From NCBI GenBank assembly GCA_002269645.1, contig NIVC01001916.1, positions 62,001-126,000 on the forward strand: 64,000 bases of DNA, given 5' to 3'. Source of the stretch: Macrostomum lignano. Lineage: Eukaryota. Positions 5,546-38,992 of the stretch are shown one piece after another. The stretch's first letter is position 1. Every line of letters begins with the position of its first letter. Position numbers and translations under genes: made by a program. The notes below the pieces were generated by a model. It was given only the letters and a program-made list of their open reading frames with translations, did no database searches and was not told the DNA's origin.

Positions 5546-5927
5546 TAGCAAAGAATCTAGTAGGTAAAACAGATACAAGCTGAGCGTTTAATCGAATGCA
5601 GGGCTGTCTACTTACATCGCCTGTAACCGTCATAGTATGCATAGTACGGATTTAGGACGCATCCTAGTGATTCATGTACTAACTGAGGCAGCAAAACGAT
5701 GCACAGTGGTAGCAAAAAGAAATTCCAAACTTTTAGATACATTTTGCTCACTAGCGAATATACAATTGCGTGCTTAATAATCTCTTTCAAAGTTCAATGA
5801 AAATTTTTTCTTTAATTTTGTAGATTTGCTACTCACATGTACATATTAGTACTATGCCATAGACATAAGTGCGATAATATAATTCAAGGCCTAGAAAGGA
5901 ACTTTAATAAATCCATATGACAGATTA

Positions 5928-8979: not shown

Positions 8980-10795
8980 TCAAGGAAGCTCAAAACTGCG
9001 CTGTCGAAGTCGTCCGCCGCCGGACTTGCCAACCACCGGATCGCCCTGCCTGCCGTCCGTGGCCGTCACCACGATGCGCGGTTGGTCGGCGGCGGATGCC
9101 GCTGCAGCCACGCCGCCACCGAGGCGATCGCGGCGACGACTGTCAAAGTCGGCTCCGCTCCGACCTCTGCTCAAATCCGACCTGTCGAAGTCGGCTCCGC
9201 TCCGACCTCTTCTGCTCAAGTCCGACCTGTCGAAGTCGGCTCCGCTCCGGCCGCTGCTCAAGCCCGATCTGTCGAAGTCGGCTCCGCTACGGCCGCTGCT
9301 CAAGCCCGACCTGTCGAAGTCGGCTCCGCTCCGGCCTCTGCTCAAGTCCGACCTGTCAAAGTCGGCTCCGCTCCGACCTCTGCTTGATTCTGACCCATCA
9401 AAGTCTCTGCTCAAGCGACTACGACCAGTCTCAAGATCTAGCGGGCTCTTCCTCTCTTGGGCCTTGTCGGAAGCGCCGAGGCCACTCAGCCGATCAAACT
9501 CTCGAGGGCTCCTTTTCAGATCTTTTTCGGGGTCCTGCGCGGTGGTCCGATCTTTGCCGGAGTCAAGGTTGCGGCCCAGTCGCCTGGCGGAATCTGACGC
9601 AGGACTTTTGTCTTTGCTCCTGTTGAACTCGTCCGTTTGCAACCTGTCGGCACGTCTGATGTCGAAGCTTCCACCAAACTTCTTCTCTGGCGGCGGCGCT
9701 GAGGGCTTTTTTTCTGCCCCTTGGAGCCCGCGGCGATCCGACTGGCTTTTGTCGCTGTTCAGAGTTCTTGGACTGCGCTTCTGGTCCTCGGATGATTTGG
9801 TAGGTCGTTTTGAGGAGTCGTCCAACCCCTTGCCAGTTCTCTTCTCCTCGCCTGTCAGCTTTTTGTAGCTCTCTGCAGCCTTCGAGCGCAGCTTCGGCTT
9901 GCCGAACGCGTCCAGCGAGCTCTCGCTGTCAGAAGTCGCTAGCCGGCCCGCCTGACGGCCTGGCGATGCAACCTTTCGGCTGGCGCCGCTCGGCGGAGTC
10001 TTGCCAACCGGACGTCTTTTCTTGCTGCGCTCGTCGTCTGAAGACGAAGTTGACGAACTCGAAGAGTCTGAGGAAGCAGCGCGGCCTCGAGCTGATTTTG
10101 ATTTCTTCTTGGCAGCCGCAGCAGCTCGGCTCTGCTTCTGCTGCTCCTCCAATCGTTTCCGTTTCTTCTCCTGCTGCTTCTTTTTCTTCTCCTCTTCGGC
10201 TTTCTGCTTCTCGAGCAGCTCTTTGCTGATTCGTTCGAAATTCTCATTGTCACTGCACAATCGCAGCTGACGGTAAAGCAGCTTGCCGGAGTCCGACGCC
10301 GGCAGCTCCACCGTCTTGTCCTTCTTCAGCCAGGCCTGGTCCTTGGACTGCGGCACGAACGTCACCTGCACGGCGTAGGGCAGCTTCACCGAGCCGTGGT
10401 TCGGATCGAAGTCGTCGTGCGACTTCACGGAGTCCACCGACTCTCCGTCGGACGCTGAGCTGGTCTTATCAGAGCCCGTTGCGTCGCTGTCCTCGCTGTC
10501 GCTGGGCTGATCTGAGCTCTTCAGGCTGGCGCGGCGGCGGCTGCGACCGAAAAACCCGGCGCTGGCATCGACGGAGTCCTCGGCCTCTTCGTCCGACCTC
10601 CTCCGCTTGCCCTTCTTGGCGCCGCTCCTGTCCTCCAGTCTCTGCTTTTTACGTTGCTTCTCTCTTGCGTCGGCGTTCTCGAACAGGATTTTGCCCTTGT
10701 CCTGGGTCAGCCCGTCTGGCATCTTGTTGGAGAACTGCAGCCGCTGCAGGTGCTGCAGAATCTCCTCCATCACCAGGTACTTGGTCACTACGATC
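8980..10795 (-). CDS. Large terminal exon (about 605 codons) encoding a K/R/S/D-rich, largely disordered region with 12-13-aa repeats (RSGADFDRSDLS); probably the last exon of the PLAT-domain gene
   Basis: 602-aa open frame, GC-rich codon usage, acceptor ctcccag|ATC at 10796. The link to the upstream PLAT exons is inferred from strand and position; intervening exons are not resolved. Confidence 0.7.
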
Positions 10796-10849
10796 TGGGA
10801 GTTTCAGGATTTGGGGGGATAACATTTCGTAAAGTGCATCATTATCGCA

Positions 10850-11106
10850 ATAACAATTGATTACACCTGCCGTAATGGGAAGATGTGCAACCGACAGCTC
10901 AGCCGCAGCTATTGCGCGGCGCATCTGAAGGCTGCGTACGGCTGTTCAGTCCAAGGACTGGGGGGTCGCCACACACACCCTCAATTACCCCCAGCTAATG
11001 CTGGCACCCATTTTACAGCAGAGTCAAGTGTCTTGCTCAAGGACACAAATTGTTCCTGACCTTTCAGTCATGAGTCCGACTCTCTCAGTACTGGGCTACC
11101 AACCCC
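10850..11106 (-). mobile_element. tRNA-derived SINE copy (internally deleted), same family as 21564-21875
   Basis: The reverse complement shares the head, the CCTTGAGCAAGACACTT..CTGTAAAATGGGTGCC core and the 3' tail with the 21.6-kb copy. Confidence 0.85.
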
Positions 11107-11499
11107 ACAACAACATTGACAGAGATATGAAAATGAAAAGCAAGAGAAGCAAGGCCAGCTTTTTCTTTTTCAAATGATCTGGGTGATTTACAACATTTCA
11201 TAAAACACAATATCTAATTAAAATACGACAGACAGCGGCTTATCAAAAAAAATTTGCTGCTCAGAAACTTCTGGGTCCACCTGTGCAGCACTACGGATGT
11301 TACCTGTTCTGCTATATTAATTAAGCCTTCTCTTTTAAGGTTAGAGCTGTATGAGTAATACAGTGGCTCTGCCAATGTCTAAATATCACGGGCCGGGTTT
11401 TTTAAGCTACTGAAAGTAGACATTCTAAACACTCGTAGAGAGGGAAAATTTCTAAATTATTCAACATTATTTGTCGCTGCAAAACCAATTTTCGCATGA

Positions 11500-12395
11500 G
11501 TTTTTGTCTGGGTTTGGGTTCGGTTTGTTATTTGATTTGGGGTTCAGGTTCGGGTTCCGGTTTTGGTTTGGTTTTGGGTTTGGGTTTGGGTTTTGGGTTT
11601 GGGTTTGGGTTTGGGTTTGGGTTTGGGTTTGGGTTTGGGTTTGAGTTCGGGTTTGGGTTTGGGTTTGGGTTCGGGTTTGGGTTTGGGTTTGAGTTTGGGT
11701 TCAGGTTCGGGTGCAGGTTCGGGTTTGGGTTTGGGTTTGGGTTTGGGTTTGGGCTTGGGTTCGGTTTTGGGTTTGAGTTCAGGTTTGGGTTCGGGTTTGA
11801 GTTTGGGTTAGGGTTTGGGTTTGGGTTTTGGGTTTGGGTTTGGGTTTTGGGTTTGGGTTTGGGTTTGGGTTTGGGTTTGGGTTTGGGCTTGAGTTCGGGT
11901 TTGGGTTTGGGTTTGGGTTCGGGTTTGGGTTTGGGTTTGGGTTTGAGTTTGGGTTAGGGTTTGGGTTTGGGTTTTGGGTTTGGGTTTGGGTTTTGGGTTT
12001 GGGTTTGGGTTTGGGTTTGGGTTTGGGTTTGGGCTTGAGTTCGGGTTTGGGTTTGGGTTTGGGTTCGGGTTTGGGTTTGGGTTTGAGTTTGAGTTTGGGT
12101 TTGGGTTTGGGTTTGGGTTTGGGTTTGGGTTTGAGTTTGAGTTTGGGTTTGGGTTTGGGTTTGGGTTTGGGTTTGAGTTTGAGTTTGGGTTCAGGTTCGG
12201 GTGCAGGTTCGGGTTTGGGTTTGGGTTTGGGTTTGGGTTTGGGCTTGGGTTCGGGTTTGGGTTTGAGTTCAGGTTTGGGTTCGGGTTTGAGTTTGGGTTA
12301 GGGTTTGGGTTTGGGTTCAGGTTTGGGCTCGGGTTTGGGTTTGGGTTTGGGCTTGGGTTTGGGTTCGGGTTCGGGCTTCGGTTTGGGTTCGAGTA
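11500..12395 (+). repeat. Degenerate telomere-like (GGGTTT)n hexamer array, about 145 units, intronic
   Basis: GGGTTT dominant, with GGGTTC/GAGTTT/GGGCTT variants and only about 3 TTAGGG units; higher-order block duplications are visible. Confidence 0.95.
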
Positions 12396-12741: not shown

Positions 12742-15700
12742 CAGTCCGGAGCGATACCTTTGCCAGAGATGGACACCTTCAACTTCACTGGCGTGTCAAT
12801 CACTCGAGCGGTCTGCATGGAAGGGGGGTTTTAGGCAGGTGTTATAAAACCGAAGAATGCGCGCACTAATGACACTTTAACTAATTTAAAATTAACTCAT
12901 GTGATGCAACTTATGTACTTGTAAAATCCTTTTGCCATTCTAGGAAAGTGCTCATGGTTCTCATGGCGTGCTGTGCACTCTGTGTGAGTTTTTGTATGCC
13001 TAATAGTTTGAATATATGACCGGTGTTACAAAAACTTTGTATCATTTTAACTCGTGAAAACCCACAAAAAGTGAGGTTCGAACCTAGCTCGCGCAGGTAC
13101 ACTGAAACCTGATTTCTGGCTTGTTTGCCTTCATCAGCCAGCCATAGCCATCGTTCTCTCCCACCACTCTCAGTGTGAACACAGATAGATGTTTCCTCTA
13201 TGGCGACACTTTTGGGGCTATGTGAGAGATTCTACGATTCAAATCTCTATTCGTCTACTTTTCTCAGTAGTCTAAATTTAATCTTTCACATAACTGTCTC
13301 TGGTGGGCGCCCCTGTCTCTTGGTGGGCGCCACTGTCTCTTGGTGGGCGCCACTGTCTCTTGGTGGGCGCCACTGTCTCTTGGTGGGCGTCCCTGTCTTT
13401 TGGTGGGCGCCACTGTCTCTTGGTGGGCGTCCCTGTCTTTTGGTGGGCGCCACTGTCTCTTGGTGGGCGCCCCTGTCTCTTGGTGGGCGCCACTGTCTTT
13501 TGGTGGGCGCCACTGTCTCTTGGTGGGCGCCACTGTCTCTTGGTGGGCGCCACTGTCTCTTGGTGGGCGCCACTGTCTTTTGGTGGGCGCCACTGTCTCT
13601 TGGTGGGCGCCACTGTCTCTTGGTGGGCGCCACTGTCTCTTGGTGGGCGCCACTGTCTCTTGGTGGGCGCCACTGTCTCTTGGTGGGCGCCACTGTCTCT
13701 TGGTGGGCGCCACTGTCTCTTGGTGGGCGTCCCTGTCTTTTGGTGGGCGCCACTGTCTCTTGGTGGGCGTCCCTGTCTTTTGGTGGGCGCCACTGTCTCT
13801 TGGTGGGCGCCCCTGTCTCTTGGTGGGCGCCACTGTCTTTTGGTGGGCGCCACTGTCTCTTGGTGGGCGCCACTGTCTCTTGGTGGGCGCCCCTGTCTCT
13901 TGGTGGGCGCCACTGTCTTTTGGTGGGCGCCACTGTCTCTTGGTGGGCGCCACTGTCTCTTGGTGGGCGCCACTGTCTCTTGGTGGGCGCCACTGTCTCT
14001 TGGTGGGCGCCACTGTCTCTTGGTGGGCGCCACTGTCTCTTGGTGGGCGCCACTGTCTCTTGGTGGGCGCCACTGTCTCTTGGTGGGCGCCACTGTCTCT
14101 TGGTGGGCGTCCCTGTCTCTTAGTGAGCTGCGCATCTAAAGCATTTTCAATGGCTCCTGTGCTCAGAGCTTGCATGAAATGCGGTTCTCGAAAAATAGAA
14201 TTCAGATATTTTTATCGGTATGCAGCGTAGCCTGGAGATCAGGGCGGCACGGAGCCAAACAGGAGTCAACTAAAACGTCAGAGTCTACGAGGCTCTGGTG
14301 TGCCAGCGGCCCAGGCTCGATTCCAAGTGCTGTCACATTAATCTGAGACTAAATTGGAATCTCGGCTTGGCTCTGCTCGTGCAATTAACGCCCTTGAGGA
14401 TCAAACCCAAAGGCACAGTGAAGTCTAAATGCCGTACGTATCGGCGCGCTTGTGTGCCTGCTCAGGGAAGTCAGTGGAATGGGCAGCAATGCCTCTCGCC
14501 GGCTGTGTGACAATGTCGTCTAAAGTGCAGGAGGGTGCACACAGCAACCTGTCTCTAACTAAAAAACAAACTCTTAATAGCTACTTAAATAATTGTTTTG
14601 ATAATAGGTTAGATGATTACATCTATACATAACTAATGCATTGTGTACATGCATTTGTCATGAATGTGTTATTATGACTGTGTGTATTTTTTTGCTACTT
14701 TGCTACGCCGGTCCAGTCGGCCGTCCTCTCCCCCCTACTCAGATATTTTCTGACTCACCCACCTGTACTTCTGCGCGTGCGTACCCCCCCTCCCTGCCTA
14801 GGCCTTTTCCGTTTAGTCAAACCCCCCCCCTTGCTCTGTGTGCGCCCCGTGCGACCCCGCCCCATTCTTTTGTTAGCTTTGCTGCCCCGCCCCTGTTTGT
14901 GATTGGCTGCCAGTCCCAGTCTGCCGTGCTGCGCCCCGGCGATTGGCTGGTACGGCTTATGTTTGTTTTTCCTATGCTGATGTCTAAGCCCCCTTTTCTG
15001 CCTTTATCCCGCGCCCTCAACCCCCAGTTTGCTGGCTATTTATTCGGACCCCCTTGAGACCCCATTCTCGTCGTCTTCGTGGCTCCCCGGTGATAGTGCC
15101 AGCGTTAATTGCGATACAAATACAATTAAAAGAATATCGATCAATACTACGAGTACCACTGCTCTGACGGCGCTGTGTCTTGTTGTACGACCGAAATCGC
15201 GGCTGGTAAGCCTTCCAATTTGCAAGTCATTTGGGTCTGCATCTGTACTAGGCACCTTAGGGGGATTAAGTGCGTCGTACGCCGGTCCCACCCCAAGCAG
15301 CTCTGCGTCGTACGCGAGTCTGTAGGCTGTCGTGCGTCGTACGCGTGTCAGTGGAGGACCGCAGCCGGGGTCAGTGCGCGAACCCGGGTCTGGGAAAGGG
15401 GCACGAAAGTACCGAGCCCTTGAGCCCCATCACCACACATTTAAAAAGAGACAACGGTCTCAAGCGTGAAAAATCTGCAAGAATTTTAGTTTACCATGGT
15501 TAGCTGGTGTCTCAAAGCACAAGCTGGTCCCTGCTGATTTACGTTTAAATCCAGTCGATGGTTTCAACGATAAACTACTAGTAGCAAGACGGTAAAACAC
15601 ATCAGCCAAATAGGATAAATTTTCATTTACACTACTGAGTAAATCATTTTTGACCTTTTTTACTTTCAGAAAAATCATTTCAAACCACAGATGCTAAAAA

Positions 15701-18700
15701 TCTAGATAGGCCACTCAGCACATTTGCGTATAAGCTACTTTCAGTTGTGGTAATCAGAGGCATTTTAATGTCGTATTCTAAAGCCAAGGCTCATTTATTG
15801 GTTCTCACCCCCAGCTTAAACCCTCCAACCGCGTCTTTCCACACTACCCCCGCCCCACCCCAATTTTTATTGCCTTTCTCGGAATTCCAGCCTAAAGCTG
15901 CCATGTACATTTCAGTGGCCAATGTACATTTGGCTGAACCAATTAGCAAGTTGTTTACGCCTGCAAGCTTGGCCTTCTAAACTTATCAAAGTCATTTCAG
16001 CTGCCTTTACGAGCGTGTTTATAAAAAAGCTTATGTATTCTTCTTTGCTACTGAACTGAAAGGCCCATTAGTTATTTTAGTATCTGTGTTTCAAACCAGC
16101 GCGTATGTTGTGTTCTAATTCACACGATGAGAAATCGACAATTAAAGGCTTAACGAAAGGAAAATTTCGACAGATCTCACCTCATTCATTGTGTCAGTTT
16201 GGCCTTTCTCGAATCTGCTTTTGTCCTCATCCCTCAGCTCGATGTCACACCTGCGACCGGCTTTGTCAAACAAAGACATGTAAATGGTAGAGTCGGTGCC
16301 CGCGAAATTCTTCTTGCCAGTCTTTGTTACAATTTGGTAAAGCGTTGTCTGGGTGTACACGGAGCCTGAAAGAGTAGAGTCAGGCAAGCGCACTTGTCCA
16401 GGTGTTGTCCACCTGCTTATCTCTCCTAGTCCAGGTGTTCTCCCACTCACCCACTCCATCGTGAACATCTTTGACAGTCCAAACCTCCCTCATTGGCGTC
16501 TCCTCATTAAGCCACTCGGAGACAGTAAAAAGCCATTTCTGACCAGTCTTGATGTCCTTCACTATCACCTGATCGACAAACCAGGTACGAGAACTTTCGC
16601 TCGATCTTAAAAATAAAAAAGTGAACAAGAGTTTGTTCCATATGCTTTCGTTACATATAAACTAGCAGTCAAGTGCCCAAGTACACAAATACTCAAGTAC
16701 TCAAGTAACTCACGTACCCAAGTACTTAAGTAGTAAAGTACAAAAGTACTCACGTACCTAAGTACTCAAGTACTAAAGTACAAAAATACTCACGTACCCA
16801 AGTAATCAAGTACAAAAGTACAAAAGTACTTAAGTACCTAAGTATTCAAGTACTAAAGTACAAAAGTACTCACGTACACAAGTAATCAAGTACAAAAGTA
16901 CGAAAGTACTCACGTACCTAAGTATTCAAGTATTCAAGTACTTCAGTACTCACGCAAGTGTCAAGTTTAAAGCCTAACCTGTTCATCTTGTCCTTTTTAT
17001 CGAACTTGTCCGACGATCGAGGATTGCGGGTGTCCAATTCCAATCTGAAAATTTAACCGAAAAAATAAGTTAAAGGAATTGCTTTGAAAGACACCTAAAG
17101 TAAAGCTGAAGGATCATAAAGACACCGGAAGTATAAAGCCGATGGGTCATATATAAGACACCGGAAGTGTCTTTTTCTTACCTGATTCCCTTGAGATCGC
17201 CAAAGTCTTCGACGTACAATTCGAATACATCTTTGCTGCCGGGCTGAAAAATATTGCGGCCACCGTCACTACTGCCGCCCTCTTCGACAGGTCGCCGAAG
17301 TTCGTGACGACCTCGCGACCCTTTGGCGCCCATCAGGCTGATGTACACTCGACAGTCAGTGCCGGAAGTCGCCTTCCGGCCAGTGTAAGTCGTGACCAGA
17401 ATGCCGCGCCCGGCTTGAGCCAAACTTTTAGCGCTGGTTGTAGGCGGGAGTCGAACCCGGTCCCTCCGACCAGATTTCAGCCAGTTGTTCACGTTGAAGT
17501 GGTACTCCATGCCCAGGCTGTAGTCTCTGACGCTCACCTGCGGTTAATTAGGAGTTGGCAATGGGGCGCCTTGACAAACTAAATGCTTTAAAAACTCATA
17601 TTTCACAAACTGCATATTTCACAAACTACACGATTCACAAACTACACAATTCACAAGCTACACAATGCACAAACTACACAATTAACAAAGTGCATAGTTC
17701 ACAAACTACACAATTCACAAACTGCATAGTTCACAAACTACACAATTCACAAAATTTACCATTCACGAACTAAGAATTCACAAGCTAGACACTTCACAAA
17801 ACAAACGCCTGAAATTATTGAAACTTTAAAATCAGAAATATTCTACTAGTTTGTAAACCAGCTTCAAAAAACAATTTACTTACCGTCTCAATTAGCCAAC
17901 GATATCGATGCTTCTTTGGCTTGACCTGATCTGCAGCTGGCAGTCTACTCGAAGCTGTAGCAGCCGCTGCCGTCGCTTCTTCAGGTGGCTCAATGGCAAG
18001 CGTCATGTCCGACAGGCGGCCGATCCGGGGCCCACGGATGTGGAACACCTCCGTGCTGCCACTGTCGAAAAAGAATGCCAACGAGCCGAACTTTTTGGTG
18101 AGGCGGCTCCGGCTTAGAGTGTCATCTTCGCCGCGGAGGGTAATATAAACCTGAGGCAGAGGGGCGGTGGATGGGCAGAGAGGGGCGGCGATGGCTAGCG
18201 TACACTCGGCAGGGAAGGGTTAGAAAAGACACTGTACAGTTGGAGACGAGATTTAAGACTGTACATTTGGAGACGAGATTTAAAAGACACTGTACATTTA
18301 GAGACGAGATTTAAAAGACAGTGTACATTTGGAGACGAGATTTAAAAGATACTGTACATTTAGAGACGAGATTCAAAAGATACTGTACATTTAGAGACTA
18401 GATCTAAAAAACAGACTGACTCACTGGAGCAGAGCAGGCAGCCTTAATATCCGTGCCAGTTTTCACCATGACCCTGTAGAGGCACTCTTTGCTCTCTGGT
18501 TTTGGCGGCGGCGGTTTCGGTGGCACGAACGGGGCCGGCGCTTCATAAGGAATTCGTTTCTTTCCGTGGATTTTCTTCTGCCGAATTAGGGTAACGTGAT
18601 TGGACGTGCAGTGCCGAAAATTAGCTTTTCTTATCATTCTTTTACCATAGCCCACAACTAGCTTGATGGGGCAGAGGAGTCACGCACCCCTGAAGCTTAA

Positions 18701-19925
18701 GGTGCCGCCACCTTGCAGTAGCGTCCTTGGTGCTAAAGCCCTTGGTGCTAAAGCCCCTGGTGCTACGAGTATTCTAACGTCCTGAAGCAGGCACATTCCT
18801 ACTTTTTACCTGCCGTTAAAAAATGAAAAAACAATAATGCAGAAATATGCTTTCTATCTTACCTCAGTTTTCATGATGTGTTTTTTATGCTGTTCCATTG
18901 TCGAGCAAAGATAACAGAATGGATTCTCTGAAAGGAAATATTTGGAGTCAATTTTACTTCATTTGATTCAATATGGAAATATGAAATATGGTTGTAGATG
19001 TCATTCTTAACGATAGCTTTCGCCCCCTCTGTAGCTACACCCCGTTAAATGAAAATAAAAAAGGCATGAAAATCCCCCAGTCACCCTCGTATCGGCGCGC
19101 CGGTAGGCCGTCCTCGTACTCGCCAGGCCTGGCCGGCGCGGTGAACAGGCGGCCGTTGCTGTCGGGCTCCATACGGGTGAACATCACCGCCAAGTTTCGC
19201 GGATCGGACGACTTGGCCAGCCGGTGGATTTCTCCGTCGGCTAAAATGTTTTATTTTGTTTTGAATGACACAAAATAAATATATTTTGATAATTGACACA
19301 AAAATTGAAAAAAATTATTATGTTTTGGCATAGCGAATAATTTATAAAAAATTATAGATTACGAATTCATATGTATATCAATAATGTATTTGAGTCATCT
19401 TATCTGTCATTAGTAATATTTTCAATCTCAACCAAAACAATAATTTAACTTTATGGAACATTAAACCATTATTGAAATTCATTTTGTATTGGACAGACTA
19501 AACTGTTATTTTTTAGAGCCAAAAATAAAAATTTAATGTGAAGCTATATATCATCATTCACACCAGTTAAGTATAATTAATTAAGGATATGCAGAAACTT
19601 CTTATTTCTCCTAAGAAATAACCTTCTTTTGAGACAAATTATAGATGATAACTAAATTTGTCAAGATGAGATTTAGGTTTATCAGTATTTGTGAAAGATT
19701 GAAAGCACCTGCAAATTCAATAAAAAATATACTACATAGCAACAGGGGAGTTACCATTAGAAAGTACTCACTCTGAGATTGCTTAATAGTTTCGTCATAT
19801 TCTTTCATCTTCTCAAGTTCGTCGACATGATCCTTCAGAAGGTCCAGATATAGCTGATTGTCTTTACAAAAATCCGTTAAATTATCTGAATATAACTGGA
19901 CTTTACGCTGCCTACTAAGCTCCAT
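12742..19925 (-). CDS. Multi-PLAT/LH2 (lipoxygenase homology) domain protein, LOXHD1-like domains
   Basis: Exons 19925-19772, 19240-19085, 18927-18863, 18577-18425, 18150-17884, 17537-17182, 17044-16979, 16605-16451 and 16365-16181 splice in frame with GT-AG ends. There are three PLAT signatures (e.g. YQIVTKTGKKNFAGTDSTIYMSL..F.KGQTD; WFVDQVIVKD..WLFTVSEWL) plus a PLAT-like exon at 12812-12742 (VKLKVSISGKGIAPDW). Exons between 16181 and 12812 are not resolved. Confidence 0.85.
13297..14120. repeat. 20-bp minisatellite (TGGTGGGCGCCACTGTCTCT), about 41 copies
   Basis: Direct tandem periodicity; open in all six frames, which explains the ORFs at 13200-14230. Confidence 0.97.
14298..14424 (+). 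mobile_element. Dispersed repeat (SINE-like); second copy inverted at 57546-57668
   Basis: GGCCCAGGCTCGATTCCAAGTGC..AATTAACGCCCTTGA..AGTGAAGT aligns with the reverse complement of 57546-57668 and contains a B-box-like CTCGATTCC. Confidence 0.65.
16670..16960. repeat. AAGTAC-rich degenerate tandem array (intronic)
   Basis: Repeated AAGTACTCA/AAGTACAA motifs; a similar AAGTACAT array lies at 32170-32420. Confidence 0.8.
17590..17800. repeat. About 16-bp degenerate minisatellite (ACAAACTACACAATTC), intronic
   Basis: Tandem periodicity. Confidence 0.8.
18230..18405. repeat. About 31-bp minisatellite (CTGTACATTTGGAGACGAGATTTAAAAGACA), intronic
   Basis: Tandem periodicity, about 5-6 copies. Confidence 0.85.
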
Positions 19926-21263
19926 ACTGTGACAATGTTATTTTATAATTTTACAGAACTTAATAATTCATTTGACTATCAAATCGCGTACAGTGACAAA
20001 TAGTGTAGGTAATAGCTACCGTAAAATTGGTGAATGTTTTAAAAGTTAAAACAGTGAATCAAACATTGATGTATTAGCAATGAACAAATACTTATCTGAA
20101 TTAAATTTTTGTTCAAGTGAATTTCAGCTTTCAACATGATTTGTTTAGTAAAAAATCTGTGATCAACCACAAGCAAATATATAACTGGTAACTTTTGTTA
20201 AAACTTATTTACCTGTCATGATTTTAGTGGCCCGGACAACTCTTGATGAATGGATAGTCAAAACCTAGGAAAAATTGAATGAGTGTATATTTTATATATC
20301 AGAAGTAAGGACGTTTCTCGTCTACTAAAGTCTACCTAATAGATCGACCTAATCTTTATATTTTTACGTAGTTTTCCTTTCGGACTTCACAATATACATG
20401 TACACAGGTGCTGAAGTACAAAAGAACGCGACACAGATAAAACTCCCATTCAGTGCTATGCGTAAAATCATCTTAGAAAATGGAAACAACTCGACTCATT
20501 GATTTTGAGAGCTCATTATATCATTCTGTTACCCATTTTTTACTAGTCATCAAGCTGAGAATGATAATATAGATTCATTTAAACCAATGAGATCACCTGT
20601 GCTATTTTTATGATTTATAGGCATGTGTTATACACTGTACATGTGCAATATTGTACGTAAATTTTTTATTATATAAACATAGAATTAGTATTTTCTATAC
20701 GAAAAGCTTTATGACTATCAATATAGAGCTATAATAAAAAGTAAGTATATATAATATCAAAAGATAAACATTGGGTCTCTTGTATTAAAAGCAATTTTTG
20801 TGTTGAAAAAGAAAAGCCTTCTACTATCTCCGTAAATGCATTTATAGTCGTTTTCACGACAAACCTCAAAAAACAAACTACACGTACATAATGTATATGA
20901 ATAGCATTAGGCATAGGCTATAAGACTCATGTATATTTATTAGATTCGCCATGTTTTGTCAGTCGGCCATTACGTAACTGCAAATAAATTTAAAACAACA
21001 TTCTACAGTACATGTACATACATGAAAAATGTATAAAAGTTTACACATCGATCAGTGCTTTCTCACTGAAATTGCCACCTGCTGCAAGTGTAAAAAAGTA
21101 AAACAAAATATAAAGAAAAATATAAAAAATAGAAATTGGTACACAGTATAGGTAAAATTAGTGTAATAAAGGCTAGAAAAAAGTACACACAGTACTCCTC
21201 AATTTAAGTTCTGTATAAAAGCGCCTATGTACATGCACATTGTATACAGAAGGTTCCAGAGCA

Positions 21264-22530
21264 TTAAGTCTTGGCCAGCTTCATCGGCCGGGGCACGTGA
21301 CCGGCTGGCGGCTGTCTCGACTTCGGCCCCATCCGAGCGGGAACCATCGGCTGTGGCGGCGGCCGCGGCTTCGGTGGCGGCGGACGCGGCGGTGGCACCC
21401 GTTTCGGCTTCGCCTTGCCTTTCAGCTTGAACCTCAGCTCTGAAGATCGATGGGTTATACAGAGGCAGCTGCAGTGGAGATTTCCTGATGCAGTATGACA
21501 CTCGGTTGAGACTTAATTTATAACCTTTTGCATATTATTGGGGTATTATGAACCATTGTTATTGGGGTTGTAGCCAAGTGGTTTGATCGAGTGTCGGACT
21601 CACGACTGAAAGGTCGGCGGTTCGATTCTCGACCCATTTGGAACAGTTTTAGCCCTTGAGCAAGACACTTAACTCAGCATAAATATTGCTCCAGTTCACC
21701 CAGCTGTAAAATGGGTGCCAGCATTAGCTGGGGTAATTAAGGGTGTGTGAGGGGACCCCCCCCAATCCTCCTTGGACTGAACAGCCGTACGCTGCCTTCA
21801 GATGCGCCGCGCAATAGCTGCGGCTGAGCTGTCGGTTGCACATCTGCCCGTTAGGACAGGTGTAAACAATTATTATTGGGGAAACAACAGGGTATTATTG
21901 GGGTATCGGGGGGAAACAACAGGGTATTATTGGGGGTATCGAGGGAAACAGCAGGGTATTATTGGGGGTATCGAGGGAAACAGCAGGGTATTATTGGGGG
22001 TATCGAGGGAAACAGCAGGGTATTATTGGGGGTATCGAGGGAAACAGCAGGGTATTATTGGGGGTATCGAGGGAAACAGCAGGGTATTATTGGGGGTATC
22101 GGGGGAAACAGCAGGGTATTATTGGGGGTATCGAGAGAAACAGCAGGGTATTATTGGGGGTATCGGGGGGAAACAGCAGGGTATTATTGGGGGTATCGAG
22201 GGAAACAGCAGGGTATTATTGGGGGGTATCGAGGAAAACAGCAGGGTATTATTGGGGGGTATCGGGGAGAAACAGCAGGGTATTATTGGGGTATCGTGAG
22301 AAACAGCAGGGTATTATTGGGGGTAACAGGGTGAATTTTTCGAATCGATCTTTATAGCAAGCAAGGCAGAGCAGAAATGAGTTATTCAGTTAGAAAAATA
22401 TTTACAATCGGCACTCACTCGGTTTCGCAGTGACTTTCAGCAATCGCCTATGGCAAGCATCCGACTCTTCAGCGATGATTGACAGCAGGACAAGGCAGAA
22501 TAGCGGAAGAAGCTTTAATAGTAGACTCAT
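21264..22530 (-). CDS. Secreted Pro/Lys/Arg-rich cationic peptide precursor A (95 aa), 2 exons
   Basis: Exon 1 22530-22419 (ATG, donor GTGAGT, phase 1) plus exon 2 21439-21264 (acceptor cttcag, TAA) gives MSLLLKLLPLFCLVLLSIIAEESDA-CHRRLLKVTAKPKLRFKLKGKAKPKRVPPPRPPPPKPRPPPQPMVPARMGPKSRQPPAGHVPRPMKLAKT*. Manual model. Confidence 0.75.
21564..21875 (+). mobile_element. tRNA-derived SINE with a CORE/Meta-like central domain
   Basis: A box TAGCCAAGTGG (21571), B box GGTTCGATTCTC (21619), central CCCTTGAGCAAGACACTTAAC..CTGTAAAATGGG resembling the MIR CORE, (TTA)n tail; second copy at 10850-11106. Confidence 0.88.
21876..22330. repeat. 32-bp minisatellite (GGGTATTATTGGGGGTATCGAGGGAAACAGCA), about 14 copies
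   Basis: Tandem periodicity directly after the SINE tail. Confidence 0.95.
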
Positions 22531-23169
22531 TGTGCCAATTAGTGATCTTTGATCTAGCTCGATCTTGTTCACAAGCATAAAATGTAGGAACCTTACTAGA
22601 TCTGTTTGCTGAAGCAGAAGAAATTTCTCAGCTTAAACCATAGACAGAAAAATTCTACAAAAAAAACTCGGATATTGCGTGCATTTCTACTAGCAAGTAG
22701 AGTAGTTAAAATTTACATCTTTTTTAACTTACCGTTGAAAAAAGTAGAAAATTAATCAATATTGCCAAATTGACATGAAGCCAATTGCATTAATAAAAAC
22801 TGACAAAAACCACATATTACAGACTCAAAGTGCCGCATCGGGTACTTTGTACTTTTGTTTACTTTTGCAAGCGTTACTGGGGTTCGCACACCATTGCTAC
22901 TTTTGTAGGGAAACTTAATGAAAAAAGCAGTTTACTACTTTGATACTTTAGAATAGGTTATATTCTCAATACAGTAGTATATCATGCATTTTAACTAACT
23001 TCGTCTTCTATCTTATTTGATATAGTAAAAAATTGAAACCTCAGCATTTACTGCCGGTTGGATATCAGAGGGTAGTGTCAGTCTGCTAGAGTGAGTAATT
23101 AACTTTGACAGTCTCTGATGATTGACAGGTCCACAGCACATTGGGTTGCCCCCTGATTGCTCAGCTGCA

Positions 23170-28919: not shown

Positions 28920-31543
28920 CTAAGCGCCAACTGCAAGTTTTTACGGGGAAAATTTATTAGGTGAGAACGTGAATTTTCCTGATTTTCAGAACTATTTTTA
29001 CATTAGGTGTGTCAGGATTCAGGACTAGTTTCTAAAATGTGTCAGGACTAGTTACTCAAATGTGTCAGGACTAGTTTATAAAACTTGTCAGGACTAGTTT
29101 CTGAAATGTGTCAGGACTAGTTACTCAAACGTGTCAGGACTAGTTTATAAAACGTGTCAGGACTAGTTTATAAAACTTGTCAGGACTAGTTTCTGAAATG
29201 TGTCAGGACTAGTTACTCAAACGTGTCAGGACTAGTTTATAAAACTTGTCAGGACTAGTTTCTGAAATGTGTCAGGACTAGTTTATAAAACGTGTCAGGA
29301 CTAGTTTATAAAACGTGTCAGGACTAGTTTATAAAACGTGTCAGGACTAGTTTATAAAACGTGTCAGGACTAGTTTATAAAATGTGTCAGGACTAGTTTA
29401 TAAAACGTGTCAGGACTAGTTTATAAAACGTGTCAGGACTAGTTTATAAAACGTGTCAGGACTAGTTTATAAAACGTGTCAGGACTAGTTTATAAAACGT
29501 GTCAGGACTAGTTTATAAAACGTGTCAGGACTAGTTTATAAAACGTGTCAGGACTAGTTTATAAAACGTGTCAGGACTAGTTTATAAAACGTGTCAGGAC
29601 TAGTTTATAAAACGTGTCAGGACTAGTTTATAAAACGTGTCAGGACTAGTTTATAAAACGTGTCAGGACTAGTTTATAAAACGTGTCAGGACTAGTTTAT
29701 AAAACGTCAGGACTAGTTTATAAAACGTGTCAGGACTAGTTTATAAAATGTGTCAACTCATCACAATTTTCTAATCGAGCCCACTTACCTTTAACGGAGC
29801 CAGCAGAAGGAACTGGAATTATGATGATGTTTGGGATTAATTAATTAATAAATTGTTGGGATAGCATGCATTTCGGAATGCAGTAAGTTAAAATTCACTC
29901 ATAAGTCACTCACCCCCAGAGCTGAGAATTTTTGCGCTAGGAGCCTTTTGGGTTCTCCCTGAGGCCTTTGCCGCGGCTCTTCCAAACTTGGATTGGTGCA
30001 GTTTTGTCATCTCGGATTTTTCGACTGAAGAAATAATTATGAGCATTGAGGGGCTTTGAGATAGAATCTGAGATAATCTACGAAAATATTTCAAAAAGTG
30101 GGTGTCAGACAGATTGGGTGTCAGACAGATTGGGTGTCAGATAGATTGGGTGTCAGACAGATTGAATGTCAGACAGATTAGGTGTCAGACAGATTGGGTG
30201 TCAGATAGATTAGGTGTCAGACAGATTGGGTGTCAGATAGATTGAATGTCAGACAGATTGGGTGTCAGATAGATTGAATGTCAGACAGATTAGGTGTCAG
30301 ACAGATTGGGTGTCAGACAGATTGGGTGTCAGACAGATTGAATGTCAGACAGATTAGGTGTCAGACAGATTGGGTGTCAGATAGATTGGGTGTCAGACAG
30401 ATTGAGTGTCAGACAGATTGAGTGTCAGACAGATTGGATGTCAGACTGATTGGGTATCAGATAGATTGAATGTCAGACTGATTGGGTATCAGATAGATTG
30501 GGTATCAGATAGTTTGGGTGTCAGACAGATTGAGTGTCAGACAGATTGGATGTCAGACTGATTGGGTGTCAGATAGATTGGATGTCAGACAGATTGGGTG
30601 TCAGACAGATTGGGTATCAGATAGATTGGATGTCAGACAGATTGGGTGTCAGACAGATTATATGTCAGAATGTTGGCTCAATGTTGGAAATTTTAGCTCA
30701 TTGTAATACGTGAAGGATCATAACAGTGAAAACATGAGTATAATGATAAAATTGATATACTTACAATTTTTAAATTTTCTAAAAGCCTTGTTACCCTTCA
30801 GGACGCTTCTTTTGTAAACTGAAAAAATTGTAAGAGGATAATTTTTTTAGTATAACATTGAAAAGAAATTTGAAGGCGCTGTGTACAGTACATTGAGGTG
30901 TTTGTGGTGTGTCTCGGAAGACATTGAGGTGTTTGTGGTGTGTCTCGAAAGACATTGAGGTGTCTGTGGGGTCTCGGAATATATTGAGGTGTCTCAGAAG
31001 ACATTAGAGGTTTGTTTGTGGGGTGTCTCGGAAGACATTGAGGTGTCTGTGGTGGGTCTCGGAAGACATTGAGGTGTCTGTGGTGGGTCTCGGAAGACAT
31101 TGAGGTGTCTCAGAAGACATTAGAGGTTTGTTTGTGGGGTGTCTCGGAAGACATTGAGGTGTCTGTGGTGGGTCTCGGAAGACATTGAGGTGTCTCAGAA
31201 GACATTAGAGGTTTGTTTGTGGGGTGTCTCGAAAGACATTGAGGTGTCTGTGGGGGGTCTCGGAAGACATTGAGGTGTCTCCTAAGACATTGAGGTGTCT
31301 TTGTGGGGTGTCTCAGAAAACATTTTTAGGTGTCTATGTGGGGTGTCTCAGAAAAAATTGAGGTGTCTGTGTGGGGGGTGTCTCAGAGTATTATTAAAAG
31401 GCAAAGCAACGCCACAGGTGAGATAACTTACGATTTTTGACGCCTCTCAGAGCCGCCCTGCAGGTGGAGCCGTTCTCTGTCCAGCACAGAAGCAGAAACA
31501 GGCAAACGAGCAGCAGCAGTTTCGAAAAAACGCACAATGACAT
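28920..31543 (-). CDS. Secreted Lys/Ser/Ala-rich cationic peptide precursor C (about 93 aa), 5 exons including two 24-bp microexons
   Basis: Exons 31543-31432, 30818-30795 (24 bp), 30024-29914 (111 bp), 29812-29789 (24 bp) and 28930-28920, all phase 1, give MSLCVFSKLLLLVCLFLLLCWTENGST-CRAALRGVKNLYKRSVLKVEKSEMTKLHQSKFGRAAAKASGRTQKAPSAKILSSGVPSAGSVKVGA*. The terminal exon is uncertain. Confidence 0.7.
29005..29755. repeat. 23-bp minisatellite (GTGTCAGGACTAGTTTATAAAAC), about 32 copies
   Basis: Tandem periodicity. Confidence 0.97.
30100..30665. repeat. 16-bp minisatellite (TCAGACAGATTGGGTG), about 35 copies
   Basis: Tandem periodicity. Confidence 0.96.
30890..31385. repeat. About 31-bp compound minisatellite (GTGTCTCGGAAGACATTGAGGTGTCTGTGG)
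   Basis: Tandem periodicity. Confidence 0.92.
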
Positions 31544-32430
31544 TTTTGGGCTTGAAGCTGCGACCTTAAACACTGACTTTCAGCACTTCACTTTTCAACT
31601 TGCCATAATCCGTTATTTTTTTCTATATTCAAAATAAATCTTTTTCAAAGGGCTGCGAGTTGGGCCATAGACGAAAAAGTAAAACAATTAAGCGTTGAAA
31701 TCTTGGAAGTGTTCGATGCGCGTCACAAAACATCGGCAAGCAGCGTGCATTTTAATAAAAGTACATCATTATATTTTTAACAACAAAACTAACATAGACT
31801 GAAATAGTTCAATAAAAGCGGAAATAGCTATTAAAAACTTATAATATTCGAGCACCTTAGTTTGAAAAAGACGATATGTATTGAAAAATACTTTGTAAGC
31901 CAGGGCAGCTGCTGCAAAAAATGACACAAAAGCGACTGCTTTCCAAAGCCGATATGTATAGAAAATTACTACTTCAAGGAGGGAAGCTGCAAAATTTAGA
32001 AATAAACAAATATATAAAATACTATAGAACACCGCCTAAGAAGCCGTGCACACGTGTATTAAGACAAATACACCGAAAGTATGTAATTACTATAAAAGTA
32101 AATTTTACAGAATAGCACATTTATTGTAAAAGTACGCTCCAAGAAATTTAGCACAATACGGGACATTTTGTAGAAAAGTACAAAAGTACACTTTCACTAA
32201 AAGTACATTTCATAGAAAACTACATTTCTTTGAAAGGTTAAATGTATATAAAAGTACATTTCTTCAAAATTAAACCTAACGTAAAAGTACATTTCTTCAA
32301 AATTAAACCTAACGTAAAAGTACATTTCGTAAAAAATAGTTTTTTAAAAGTACACTTTTATTAAAAGTACATTTCGTTAGTTTTGTAAAAGTACACTTTT
32401 AATAAAAGTACATTTCGTAAAAAGTTAAAT

Positions 32431-33083: not shown

Positions 33084-36000
33084 AGTGGCCGTGGCCTCTG
33101 CCTGCCTACCGGAGCACCTGTGCAGCCTGGCAGCAGACGCGAACACTCCGTGACCCTGCGGACAGTGGAAGTACCTTCGCCCCTCCACGGATCCGTCATT
33201 TCTGCCCACCGCGTTGTCCAGCTCCACCCCGTACCAAACTCCCGGGGCGAAGTGGCACTCGCCAACGAACCGGACGGTGCCTCGACGTTGGCCGGCTACG
33301 ATCACTCGGTCGCCGAGGGCGAAACTGTGCCGGGTTCGAACCCGGGCCTCCACGCCGCTGACGTCGATTGCGCCGCGATGGACCCGGGTGAAGCCGGACA
33401 CGCGGCTCATGGGGACCAGCACCTGGCCGGGTCGGACACGGGGTCGGACACTTAATTCCTGGACTCTTGATTCCTGATAACCAATTCTCGGACACCATTC
33501 CTGAACACTTCATTCCCGGACTCTCCTTTCCTGGACACTTCATTCTTAGACACTCCATCTTTAAACACTTCATTCCCGGACACTTCATTCCCGGACACTT
33601 CATTCCCGGACACTTCATTCCCGGACACTTCATTCCCGGACGCTTCATTCCTCCAGACATTTAATTCCCGGACAGTGCGGACACTTCATTCCCGGACACT
33701 TCATTCCCAGAATCTTCATTCCCAGACTCTCCATTTCTTCGGACGCTTTATTCCTGGAAATTTAATTCCCGGACATTTAATTCCCGGACACTTAATTCCC
33801 GGACACTTCATTCCTGGACACTTCATTCCTACGGACACTTCATTCCCGGACACTTCATTCCTAGACACTTCATTCCTAGACACTTTATCTTCAGACCCTC
33901 CATTCCCGGACACTCACCCCCGGCCAGCCGGACACTGGAAGTATCTGACTCCGGACACGCAACCGTCGTGTCGGCCAGCCTGCGGCGTCTCGAGTTCAAC
34001 TCCGGCCCAGACGCCTGGCGCGAATTCCACGGGGCCCCAGTAGCGGAGGGTGCCGGGCCGGGACCCAGCAACCAGGACTCGGTCGCCCAAGTTGGAAGGC
34101 GGCTGATCGGCTTGCTGCTGCGGTCTCTGCTGCGGCTGCCGCTGTGACTGCTGCTGCTGCTTCTGCAGTGCAGCCGCCTGATGTGTGATCAGAAGCGATA
34201 ATTAGGATGATTCTTAGGGGATAATTGGGAAGATTCTTAGGTTATAATTAGGAAGATTCTTAGGGAATAATTATGGTGATACTTAGGGGATAATTAGGGA
34301 GATTCTTAGGGGGTAATTAGGAAGATTCTTAGGGGATAATTAAGGGTGATTGCGCCTTAATTTTTGTCCTTATTGTCATTAGGGGACAATTAGGAAGATT
34401 ATTAGGGGATAATTATAGGAAGATTCTTAGGGGATAATTAGGAAGCATCTTAGGGGATAATTAGGAAGCATCTTAGGGGATAATTAGGAAGCATCTTAGG
34501 GGACAATTAGGAAGTTTATTAGGGGATAATTATAGAAAGATTCTTAGGGGATAATTAGGAAGCATCTTAGGGGATAATTAGGAAGCATCTTAGGGGACAA
34601 TTAGGAAGATTCTTAGGGGATAATTAGGGAAATTGTAAGGGGATAATTAGAGAGATACTTGGGGGTTATTTAGAGAGATTCTTAAGGGATAATTAGGGCG
34701 ATTCTTAGAGAACAGTTAGGAAGATTTTTAGGGGATAATTAGGAATATACTTAGAGGATGATTAGGAATATTATTAGGGGACAATTAGGAAGATTCTTAG
34801 GAAATAATTAGGAAGATTCTTAGGCGATGAGTAGGGAGACTCTTAGAGGATAATTGGGGGTAGAATCTTAGGGGATAACAAGGGGATAACTAGGGAGATT
34901 CTTAATACATCCAACTAAACGTGCTTCCCAGTGAAAGAAGAGGAGTGAAAGGCAAAGGCAAGGGAAGTCCAACCTCTTCAAACGCTGACGAAGCCACCGA
35001 AGCGGTTGATGAAGCGGACGACAGCGGAGCTGCAGCCGCGGCAGCCGGCACCGAAGCGGTGGACGAAGCGGACAGCCGAGGCGGTCGCTCAGGCCGACTG
35101 CCAGCCAGTAAAGTGAGCAGTCTCGATCGGATCTCTCGATTCTCAGCCGAAGAGTTCGAGTTGAACAAACCAGAGGTCAGTTGAGGCAGGCAGTCGACGG
35201 GACGCCGGAGCAACTCGTCTGTGGCTGCCAGAGCTGCCTGACCTGCGCTGGAGACCAGCAGGCGGGCGCTGCCTTCGCTCAGGTGTGCAGCGGCCAGGTG
35301 CAGCGGGGTGGCGTCTTCGAACTCGGTGCATCTGATTGTGAAAGAGGGCATGAATTGTTAAAGAGTCGGTTCTGAGTTCGAACTCTATTATGACCGTTTA
35401 CTATGAGTATGTTTGTACTTTAGTCTATGACCGGTTTCTATGAGTATGTTTCTACTTTAGTCTATGACCGGTTCTATGAGTATGTTTGTACTTTAGTCTA
35501 TGACCGGTTTCTATGAGTATGTTTGTACTTTAGTCTATGACCGGTTTACTATGAGTTTGATTGTACTTAGTCTATGAAAGGTTTCTATGAGTTTGTTTGT
35601 ACTTTAGTCTATGGCTGGTTTTTGAGTTTGTACTTTAGTCTATAGCTGTTTTCTGAGTTTATACTTTAGTCTATGGCTGTTTTCTGAGTTTGTATTTTAG
35701 TCTATGGCTGGTTTTTAAGCTTGTACTTTAGTCTATGGCTGGTGTTTGAGTTTGTACTTTAGTCTATGGCTGGTTTTTAAGCTTGTACTTTAGTCTATGG
35801 CTGGTTTCTGAGTTTGTAATTTAGTCTATGGCTGGTTTCTGAGTTTGTAATTTAGTCTATGGCTGGTTCTGAGTTTGTACTTTAGTCTATGGCTGGTTTC
35901 TGAGTTTGTACTTTAGTCTATGGCTGGTTTTTTAGTTTGTACTTTAGTCTATGGCTGTTTTCTAAGTTTGTACTTTAGTCTATGGCTGGTTTTTAAGCTT

Positions 36001-37553: not shown

Positions 37554-38922
37554 CTGGGAATGAGGCATGCAATGAAAAAATGATCGTGAATAATGGTATT
37601 ATGAAAAAGAAATATCACAATCAATGAATCTTTATGAGAATGAAAAATGTGGAAAACATTTATCTAAATCTTATCAAAACTAGAATTGAAATTAAAGCTA
37701 GACTTTAATTAAGTAGAATAGTTAAGATAGCTTTTAGCTTTATTATAAGTTATAGACCCTGAATTACAGATTTATTAGGATTTAGGCCTATAGATTAAAA
37801 CTTTTTTGTTTATCTACGAATAATATTCAGAATGTAGAATGTTTGCATGAATAAAGTACCTACATAAATAGAGTAACAAATAAAAAAATAACTAGTATTG
37901 TTTATTCCCTAAATATTTATGTACTGACTTATTAGTTAAATAAAAATATTTATAACATCCTTATTATGCTATAAGTATAAGTATAATCTAGTCTTAGACG
38001 TGGCTATAGGCCAAGGCTTAAACAAACAGAGCTTATTTAATCAATAAATATTCATATTCATATGAGCTAAATATAATTATTTTCAATAATTTCAGTATTA
38101 TCATTATTTTAATAAATGCCTAAATGGATCCGATACTGCCAAGTGCAAGCAATGGGATTTTGAAAATGAATTCCTACAAGCAGCAACTGAGTAATACTAA
38201 TATGGTGATAGGATAGTTAGGCTGTAGCAGTCGGGAGTAGACATTTCTCTATTTTTTTCTCTAGACATTTCTCGACATTTCTCTATTTTTTCGTTTTATT
38301 TGTCTTCATATTACAAATATCACTAAACACTAGGCATTGGAGTCAGTAGATTGATTAGAAAACAAACAAAAATCACTATTGTGTCTATGTCTAAGCAGCA
38401 GCTTAGCAGTTATTCGTTAACCCAAAAAAAAACCATGCCTACGAAAAAAATTATTTCATGACTATTAGTTAAAAATAGAAGTAACAACAACAAGGCAGAA
38501 TAGTAAAAAATTTATTAATTTTTACTAAAAAAAACTAATGTACAGTTTTTTAATATTACTAACATATATACGTTGTCTTTTAGCAAATTTAAAGCATTTT
38601 ACAGCACATTTGATTTACTGTTTTATTTATTAAAAATTTTAATTACAAACTTTCTTGCCAAAGTAGTGCACTGCTTCTTATAAGTAGTATTTGACAACGA
38701 TAAATTTACTAATTATTATTATTCCTCTATTCGTCCGAAAAAGTTCAGCTTTGACAAAAATTGAAAAAGTATTTGCTTTCTACAAATCATGGCTTTTATT
38801 AACTGTTTTTATTCAAGACAAAAATTATAACCTTAACGCTCTAAAAAAATTTTGGATTTGCAAACTTTCCTACTGATAGTAGAAATATCAACATTTTCTT
38901 CTATTTTGGTTGTACTGCTAGA

Positions 38923-38992
38923 TTTCTAGAAATTTCTTGAATCAATTAAATGACACAATTTCGAGAAATTTCCCCCGGGCAGTCTTTATAAA
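38923..38992 (+). promoter_or_regulatory. Heat-shock promoter: 4-unit HSE, 3-unit HSE and TATA box
   Basis: tTTCtaGAAatTTCttGAAt (38923-38942), tTTCgaGAAatTTCc (38959-38973) and TATAAA (38987-38992), about 115 bp upstream of the sHSP ATG. Confidence 0.92.

Follow-up and report, generated by a model that had tools for sequence, protein, structure and literature searches.

A probable gene of two exons encoding a small, strongly basic and proline-rich secreted peptide in Macrostomum lignano

The locus described here lies on the minus strand of a 64,000-nucleotide stretch of Macrostomum lignano DNA (the window, from contig NIVC01001916.1). It raises the question whether its predicted product, peptide A, is a convergent proline-rich antimicrobial peptide (PrAMP), as a sequence-only reading had proposed, a secreted polycation with some other role, or the chance translation of GC-rich DNA. 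Our analysis points to an unannotated gene of two exons, whose predicted product is probably a small secreted peptide, very basic and rich in proline. The new information consists of the evidence for a local gene family and for the origin of the proline-rich part in a triplet repeat. We regard the result as a reasonable lead and not as a discovery.

Gene model and reading frame of peptide A

Joined in phase 1, the two predicted exons encode a precursor of 95 residues, MSLLLKLLPLFCLVLLSIIAEESDACHRRLLKVTAKPKLRFKLKGKAKPKRVPPPRPPPPKPRPPPQPMVPARMGPKSRQPPAGHVPRPMKLAKT (Table 1). Exon 1 contributes MSLLLKLLPLFCLVLLSIIAEESDACHRRLLKVTAKP and the first base of the codon for Lys38. Its product starts with MSLLLK, continues with LLPLFCLVLLSII and then AEESDACHRRLLKVTAKP, and reads as a textbook signal peptide, with an h-region from L7 to I19, a short acidic segment (EESD) and one cysteine (Cys26). 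The start codon stands in the context ggcacaATGa. A further in-frame ATG is located upstream in a poor context (cattttATGc) and, if it lies within the mRNA, would place MLVNKIELDQRSLIGT before the signal peptide.

The intron opens with a consensus GTGAGT donor, starting at 22418, and closes with the pyrimidine-rich acceptor tcttCAG, the CAG of which occupies 21442-21440. Without its two inserts, a SINE-like element and a minisatellite, the intron would measure about 210 nt. Another copy of the SINE-like insert is found at 10848-11113, in reverse orientation. A tRNA gene inside the intron was considered and rejected: neither ARAGORN nor Rfam made a call, and the tRNA-like stretch is part of the SINE-like repeat.

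Exon 2 stands out sharply as a GC island: its GC content is 69% as a whole and rises to 78% between 21301 and 21400, whereas the flanks have 25-35%. It encodes an alternating-basic module, KLRFKLKGKAKPKR, followed by a proline-rich tail, VPPPRPPPPKPRPPPQPMVPARMGPKSRQPPAGHVPRPMKLAKT. The frame inherited from exon 1 stays open for 58 codons past the acceptor, up to a TAA at 21264-21266. The assignment of exon 2 to one of the flanking genes, the PLAT-repeat gene downstream or the CAP-Gly gene upstream, was rejected in view of this TAA, the poly(A) signal and the absence of upstream PLAT exons. A neuropeptide precursor was also rejected, as Gly-dibasic amidation sites are absent from the sequence as read.

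Table 1. Positions in the window of the features of peptide A and of its predicted paralogues B and C
Feature	Position	Strand	Description
GTCTATGG upstream of A	22638-22645	minus	115 nt 5' of ATG
In-frame upstream ATG of A	22576-22578	minus	poor context
Coding join of A	22530-22419 + 21439-21264	minus	95-aa precursor, phase 1
Exon 1 of A, coding part	22419-22530	minus	112 nt, phase 1, begins at ATG
Intron of A	21440-22418	minus	979 nt, GTGAGT donor to tcttCAG acceptor
Minisatellite in intron of A	21879-22325		32-nt unit, 13.9 copies
SINE-like insert in intron of A	21556-21878		tRNA-like head
Exon 2 of A, coding part	21264-21439	minus	173 nt + TAA; 69% GC
Decayed triplet repeat in exon 2 of A	21355-21396	minus	(GGC)14 on the plus strand, equal to (CCG)n on the coding strand; Tandem Repeats Finder, low threshold
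First AATAAA past the stop of A	20936-20941	minus	implied 3' UTR of about 320 nt
Paralogue B including upstream element	28920-31672	minus	5 exons; 103-aa predicted secreted Lys-rich product
Exons of B	31543-31432, 30818-30765, 30024-29914, 29812-29789, 28930-28920	minus	all phase 1
GTCTATGG upstream of B	31665-31672	minus	129 nt 5' of ATG
Paralogue C including upstream element	4178-5864	minus	4 exons; 102-aa predicted secreted Tyr/Lys-rich product
Exons of C	5742-5616, 4883-4833, 4731-4678, 4254-4178	minus	consensus splice sites
GTCTATGG upstream of C	5857-5864	minus	122 nt 5' of ATG

Over exon 2, the sequence-only reading had seen nothing but an acidic frame in the list of open reading frames. 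This is so at the default threshold, where a 100-aa ORF at 21199-21501 is listed, but no longer at a minimum of 30 aa, where the proline frame appears as a 44-aa ORF at 21264-21398. Among the CAG and TAG acceptors near the GC island, only those giving exon starts at 21484 and 21439 yield a long ORF, and both lead into the proline frame. Furthermore, an alternating-basic pattern that extends from K36 in exon 1 to K50 in exon 2 crosses the junction in this frame only, and peptide A is basic, as are its paralogues B and C. Codon usage was tried as a means of telling the frames apart and proved uninformative, since every frame of CCG-rich DNA is GC3-rich; peptide A favours CCG and AAG codons, as do the bona fide genes of the window.

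The gene model of peptide A and its proline frame are thus predictions that the sequence supports. It is extremely unlikely that exon 2 is used otherwise, be it in the acidic, alanine-rich frame or from the acceptor at 21484. Both options give long ORFs in the frame of exon 1, and the acidic ORF is the longest of the region. However, the acidic frame is reached solely through GAG or AAG acceptors adjoining the strong CAG, one GAG lying 2 nt downstream of it, and the 116-aa acidic secreted protein predicted from that GAG would depart from the basic character common to B and C. The acceptor at 21484, which has the weaker pyrimidine tract (0.53 vs 0.63), would add RNLHCSCLCITHRSSE, 15-16 residues with four cysteines, before an unchanged proline-rich tail; a Cys-rich isoform made through it is possible.

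Local relatives and a common upstream element

Both strands of the window were scanned for an ATG with a signal-peptide-like ORF running into a GTRAGT donor, with block-shuffled windows as the control. The scan revealed three signal-peptide exons with a consensus donor, against a mean of 0.23 expected from the shuffled windows. They share the minus strand and phase 1 and correspond to the first exons of A (112 nt), B (112 nt) and C (127 nt). B and C are complete small genes with consensus splice sites throughout. They share with A the strand, the upstream GTCTATGG, the phase-1 signal exon, a minisatellite in intron 1 and a predicted basic product with a total length near 100 aa. In all three products, one cysteine comes shortly after the signal, within an E-x(3-4)-C motif.

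The 8-mer GTCTATGG precedes the three start codons at closely matched distances (Table 1). In control sets of 5000 each, any common 8-mer at matched distance turned up once among the shuffles and three times among random triples drawn from the real window sequence. GTCTATGG has eight occurrences in the window in all, not counting two minisatellites that contain it; in 62 kb of M. lignano DNA from elsewhere, its frequency does not depart from the background. We infer that it is a candidate promoter or regulatory element common to A, B and C.

The mature parts of B and C are similar to each other, with a score reached by 0 of 2000 shuffles. A and B align from Met1 over the splice junction to LKG with a score of 46, which 0.3% of shuffles reach. 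No significant similarity was found between mature A and B or C (scores reached by 93% and 40% of shuffles, respectively), and the proline-rich tail of A has no counterpart in the two paralogues, which are not Pro-rich. B and C are divided into four to five exons, of which the internal ones are short and symmetric, whereas in A one GC-rich exon follows the first; the two paralogues are Lys-rich, with AT-rich codons and mutually similar mature parts, and A is Pro-rich.

The exon structure of B and C recalls the micro-exon genes (MEGs) of schistosomes, parasitic flukes in which such genes encode orphan small secreted proteins by a signal exon and then short symmetric exons. Going by this general description of MEGs, the likeness lies in the internal exons of B (54, 111 and 24 nt) and C (51 and 54 nt), which are symmetric and multiples of three. 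A differs in having two exons only, without micro-exons.

A search with the concatenated B, C and A products matched one protein, UniRef A0A1I8FTT7 from Macrostomum lignano, with 99% identity over exons 1-3 of B. Junctions 1/2 and 2/3 of B are identical in this public model to those derived here. The automated model joins B to the upstream CAP-Gly gene via an acceptor just 5' of the ATG of B; we consider B a separate gene because it has its own upstream element. Taken together, the three signal exons, the shared 8-mer, the minisatellite introns and the basic exons suggest that peptide A probably belongs, with B and C, to a local Macrostomum lignano family of secreted peptides that are small and basic.

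Relatives of peptide A were also sought in public collections. A homology search with the 95-aa precursor against 5.8 billion clustered proteins gave 14 word candidates, none of them at E <= 10, and an exhaustive phmmer run with the exon-2 peptide over 1.84 billion representatives gave 0 matches. Peptide A is absent from the UniRef and NCBI protein sets of M. lignano, both covered by the protein searches. A Pfam scan assigned it to no family, and PDB sequences gave no meaningful match, the best being Cas11a at chance level (E = 0.19). Exact-product look-ups found no record for the acidic ORF, the exon-1 ORF, the plus-strand ORF within exon 2 or the 44-aa proline ORF, and none for the sHSP of the window or A0A1I8FTT7. 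No match to the core motif of peptide A was obtained in a full-text literature search, and literature searches on proline-rich peptides, antimicrobial peptides and micro-exons in Macrostomum returned nothing relevant. As annotation pipelines commonly discard products of less than 100 aa, it carries little weight that peptide A is unannotated.

The window also contains a duplicated two-domain sHSP, which is paralogous to the recorded ones, with 64-72% identity. The M. lignano loci of these paralogues (L001-L003) match the window at the sHSP only, with no CAP-Gly gene, PLAT gene or peptide A, B or C within 10 kb.

Composition, triplet repeat and comparison with PrAMPs

The composition given for the mature peptide in the sequence-only reading was reproduced: counted from Cys26, the 70-mer contains 12 K and 9 R, hence 21 basic residues, with 20 P and no D or E, and the core KRVPPPRPPPPKPRPPPQP is present exactly as described. 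The lack of acidic residues holds if the signal is cleaved after Ala25, which gives the 70-mer, but not if it is cleaved after Ala20, where EESD is retained. Cleavage after Ala20 suits the -3/-1 rule as well as Ala25 and yields a 75-mer with 3 acidic residues and a net charge of +18. For the 70-mer and for the 44-mer that would remain after a cut behind KPKR, the net charge is +21 and +9, respectively. The proline content amounts to 26.7% in the 75-mer, 28.6% in the 70-mer and 40.9% in the 44-mer. Peptide A has three PRP motifs and one PKP, and the 70-mer has a single aromatic residue. Between K36 and K50 every second residue is basic, and the hydrophobic moment of this segment, taken at 180 degrees, is 1.1-1.3.

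The decayed triplet repeat in exon 2 coincides exactly with the PPPRPPPPKPRPPP core of peptide A, and the GC island leaves four of the six frames open. Neither a gene nor an antimicrobial peptide (AMP) can be argued from composition and an open frame by themselves, because CCG-rich DNA gives both in one frame. Elsewhere in the window, a hexamer array at 11509-12389 likewise translates to a Pro/Lys-rich "peptide".

By the definition of Welch et al. (2020, Box 1), PrAMPs have at least 25% proline and a net charge of +1 or more; PRP motifs are indicative, and the essential criteria are antimicrobial activity and an intracellular target, the 70S ribosome and/or DnaK (PMC7736402). The three sequence-level features are found in peptide A, with 26.7-40.9% proline, a net charge of +9 to +21 and 3 PRP. 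With Bac7, PR-39, oncocin and apidaecin it shares the proline content of at least 25%, the strongly cationic character, the PRP motifs (three in A) and a secretory precursor, and its length falls inside the range of the family (Bac7 has 60 aa). In contrast to these peptides, A shows no homology to PrAMP precursors, has more Lys than Arg and contains poly-Pro runs of 3-4 residues, longer than in any listed PrAMP. Their spaced PRP motifs carry Tyr, Leu, Ile or Phe anchors; those of A do not, and A has one aromatic residue in 70.

Smith-Waterman comparison with the 14 PrAMPs of PMC7736402 gave scores that mostly fall within those of composition-matched shuffles. The best local likeness pairs PKPRPPPQP with PQPRPPHPR of apidaecin 1a and is reached by 0.2% of shuffles, a value uncorrected for the 14 comparisons. 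This stretch is internal in peptide A, whereas class II peptides depend on the C-terminal region (PMC11678341). Binding of class I PrAMPs needs a conserved core containing PRP (PMC11678341), and all class I peptides compared have a PRP anchored by Y, L, I or F. A regex scan of peptide A for an anchored core of the YLPRP/RLPRP type found none, only a VPRP near the C-terminus. The invertebrate PrAMPs covered by a 2024 review come from annelids, crustaceans, insects and molluscs, with none from flatworms (PMC11678341).

Proposed role and alternative readings

We tentatively read peptide A, with somewhat less than even confidence, as the product of a real secreted-polycation gene of the local family that would act extracellularly on polyanionic surfaces. 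The gene would be restricted to the lineage of Macrostomum lignano and would be one of a family of three or more genes on the same strand (C, A and B), its intron having been inflated by the SINE-like insert and the minisatellite. The 95-aa precursor would enter the secretory pathway and lose a signal peptide of 20-25 aa, and a second cut may follow after KPKR51. The released product would be a disordered polycation composed of two modules: an N-terminal module with basic residues in alternate positions (K36 to K50) and a Pro-rich module, which is expected to form a polyproline-II helix and would have originated by CCG repeat expansion and decay inside exon 2. Judged by its composition only, peptide A may stick electrostatically to extracellular polyanionic surfaces. 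These might be the envelopes of microbes, mucus or glycans that are secreted, or secretions that serve adhesion or reproduction. A role in antimicrobial defence would be possible but is not established.

Secretion of polycations is known in this organism. In the cohesive adhesion protein Mlig-ap1 of M. lignano, extremely K/R-rich regions, in which Pro residues are scattered, bind to anionic sugars, and the animal is kept from detaching by cationic peptides in free form (PMC6410801). The KR regions of Mlig-ap1 resemble peptide A in that they are from the same organism, secreted and of extremely basic low complexity, with K/R and Pro (antigen peptide SRKPRRKNRKSRKP; PMC6410801). This is a likeness of description: Mlig-ap1 is a giant multidomain protein, with KR regions of more than 3,600 aa and lectin and vWD domains, whereas peptide A has 95 aa and is domainless. 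M. lignano also has at least 76 prostate-limited transcripts, many of them secreted and 31 without a BLAST hit (PMC5977470). Since the animal secretes K/R-rich polycations and has many orphan gland products, peptide A could equally be a component of a gland secretion.

The reading as a convergent PrAMP is neither supported nor refuted by the sequence, because the essential criteria are functional, the likeness is mostly compositional, the anchored core is absent and the secretion of polycations is known. That peptide A is a true PrAMP, taken up into bacteria by an SbmA-type transporter and then blocking the ribosome exit tunnel or DnaK, appears very unlikely to us. AMP families typically combine conserved signal exons with divergent mature parts, and peptide A shows this combination, together with a secretory precursor that contains an acidic stretch of a few residues and a KR site, the sequence-level PrAMP features and the local likeness to apidaecin 1a. 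Against this stand the lack of homology to PrAMP precursors and of a Pfam match, the shuffle-level scores, the missing aromatic- or Leu-anchored PRP core, the internal position of the apidaecin-like stretch, the excess of Lys over Arg with unusually long proline runs, and the absence of flatworm PrAMPs from the record (PMC11678341). In addition, the proline run is a by-product of the triplet repeat, and neither B nor C, the other members of the family, is Pro-rich. It is just as doubtful that A is the first flatworm PrAMP, born recently by CCG expansion in the second exon of a secreted basic-peptide family member, with B and C in the ancestral non-Pro-rich state.

A role in host defence at the bacterial surface, in which the module of alternating K and apolar residues would bind LPS, teichoic acids or membranes and the Pro-rich tail would serve as a spacer, is quite unlikely. 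It is in line with the alternating basic residues of K36-K50 and their hydrophobic moment, with the net charge of +18 to +21, and with the existence of invertebrate Pro-rich AMPs, such as the myticalins, whose action is lytic and in which the ribosome-binding consensus is missing (PMC11678341). However, the apolar face, made up of P, L, F, L, G, A and P, is weak, and identical features explain the binding of any polyanion. Somewhat unlikely, in our estimate, is that the locus is non-functional, a relic of a B/C-family signal exon that stands upstream of a GC-rich repeat island by chance or as a decaying pseudogene. GC-rich triplet repeats keep frames open by chance, as four of six are here, the core derives from such a repeat, and the mature part has no relation to those of B and C. 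The SINE-like insert and the minisatellite have invaded the intron, and none of the searched collections holds a homologue or an annotated product. Yet the ATG, the signal peptide, the consensus donor, the YAG acceptor, the in-phase ORF and the AATAAA are all intact, the upstream element is conserved, and the evidently intact B and C also have minisatellite introns; moreover, products as short as A (less than 100 aa) are those that annotation pipelines commonly drop.

If peptide A is not expressed, the locus serves as a caution that the translation of CCG-rich DNA gives "AMP-like" peptides for free. If it proved to be antimicrobial, PrAMPs would be extended to Platyhelminthes and a triplet-repeat origin of a PrAMP would be documented; as the first flatworm PrAMP, it would represent the traceable convergent birth of such a peptide from simple-sequence DNA. 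A gland secretion would bear on the charge-based chemistry of adhesion and release described in M. lignano. If expressed, peptide A and its relatives would give a widely used model of regeneration and sexual selection a family of secreted peptides that is missing from its annotation, and would show that annotation pipelines miss products of less than 100 aa. In that case, GTCTATGG would be a candidate shared regulatory element usable in transgenic reporters.

Genes and an inverted duplication around peptide A

The features of the window are collected in the table below. Downstream of peptide A, the putative gene for a secreted, basic, Pro-rich precursor, and on the same strand, lies the PLAT/LH2-repeat gene, whose apparent 5′ end at ~19.2 kb is ~1.7 kb past the poly(A) signal of A. 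The 602-aa open frame, for which Pfam gives no match, probably represents one large exon of an uncharacterised gene. The arms of the inverted duplication, ~6.67 kb each and 100% identical, are separated by a 1062-nt spacer; the duplication is either a palindrome of very recent origin or an artefact of the assembly.

Features of the window
Feature	Positions	Strand	Remarks
27-nt stretch encoding ASGRTQKAP	423-449	-	Peptide identical to that of gene B 29965-29939
Gene C, four exons	4178-5864	-	Predicted 102-aa secreted peptide
Retroelement integrase fragment	6799-7567	+	Integrase_H2C2 + rve
602-aa open frame	8980-10788	-	Rich in Ser, Asp, Glu, Lys, Arg
SINE-like element, tRNA-like head, two copies	21556-21878; 10848-11113
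TGGGTT hexamer array, 146 copies	11509-12389		Adjoins 602-aa open frame
PLAT/LH2-repeat (LOXHD1-like) gene, multi-exon	about 14000-19250	-	Pfam PLAT match in exon 17178-17537
Gene B, five exons	28920-31672	-	Predicted 103-aa secreted Lys-rich peptide
Inverted duplication arms	35161-41833; 42896-49567
Two-domain HSP20 gene, one per arm	38937-39905; 44824-45621	+; -
GTCTATGG in arrays	35595-36264; 48464-49317
GTCTATGG, eight single copies	5857, 22638, 25939, 26016, 31665, 41061, 43661, 56085

Repeats and mobile elements

The window is extraordinarily rich in minisatellites, with units of 16-40 nt (61 TRF rows), and one is found in introns of each of A and its proposed paralogues, B and C. Many of these minisatellites yield long spurious ORFs in several frames (e.g., 1089-2019 and 13200-14230). 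The two SINE-like copies share 88% identity, and one of them lies inside the intron of peptide A, inserted into or beside a 32-nt minisatellite; the tRNA-like head is not called as a tRNA by ARAGORN or by Rfam. The integrase fragment is probably a decayed LTR-retrotransposon copy, since it is broken across two frames.

The upstream 8-mer and the public model of gene B

The candidate regulatory 8-mer GTCTATGG occurs 50 times in the window, against 1.3 expected, with the majority of copies within a 31-nt minisatellite. Eight copies stand alone, and three of these sit 115-129 nt 5′ of the three signal-peptide genes (A, B and C). The internal exons of gene B measure 54, 111, and 24 nt, with phase 1 throughout. 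In the public M. lignano protein model A0A1I8FTT7 (P0003), gene B is joined to an upstream CAP-Gly gene (exons ~32.4-33.5 kb); because gene B has an upstream element of its own, this suggests that the model is a chimera of the two genes.

Gene C and a possible fourth family member

Gene C is homologous to gene B; its product, Tyr-rich at the start (NPYYAYYDGYRRYK) and then Lys-rich, has no match in database searches. The ASGRTQKAP-encoding stretch, which lies at the window's left edge, is immediately preceded by an in-frame stop, and no signal exon was found for it. It differs from its gene B counterpart at six nucleotides, and all six differences are synonymous, which suggests that the stretch belongs to a fourth family member, or a fragment of one, under purifying selection.
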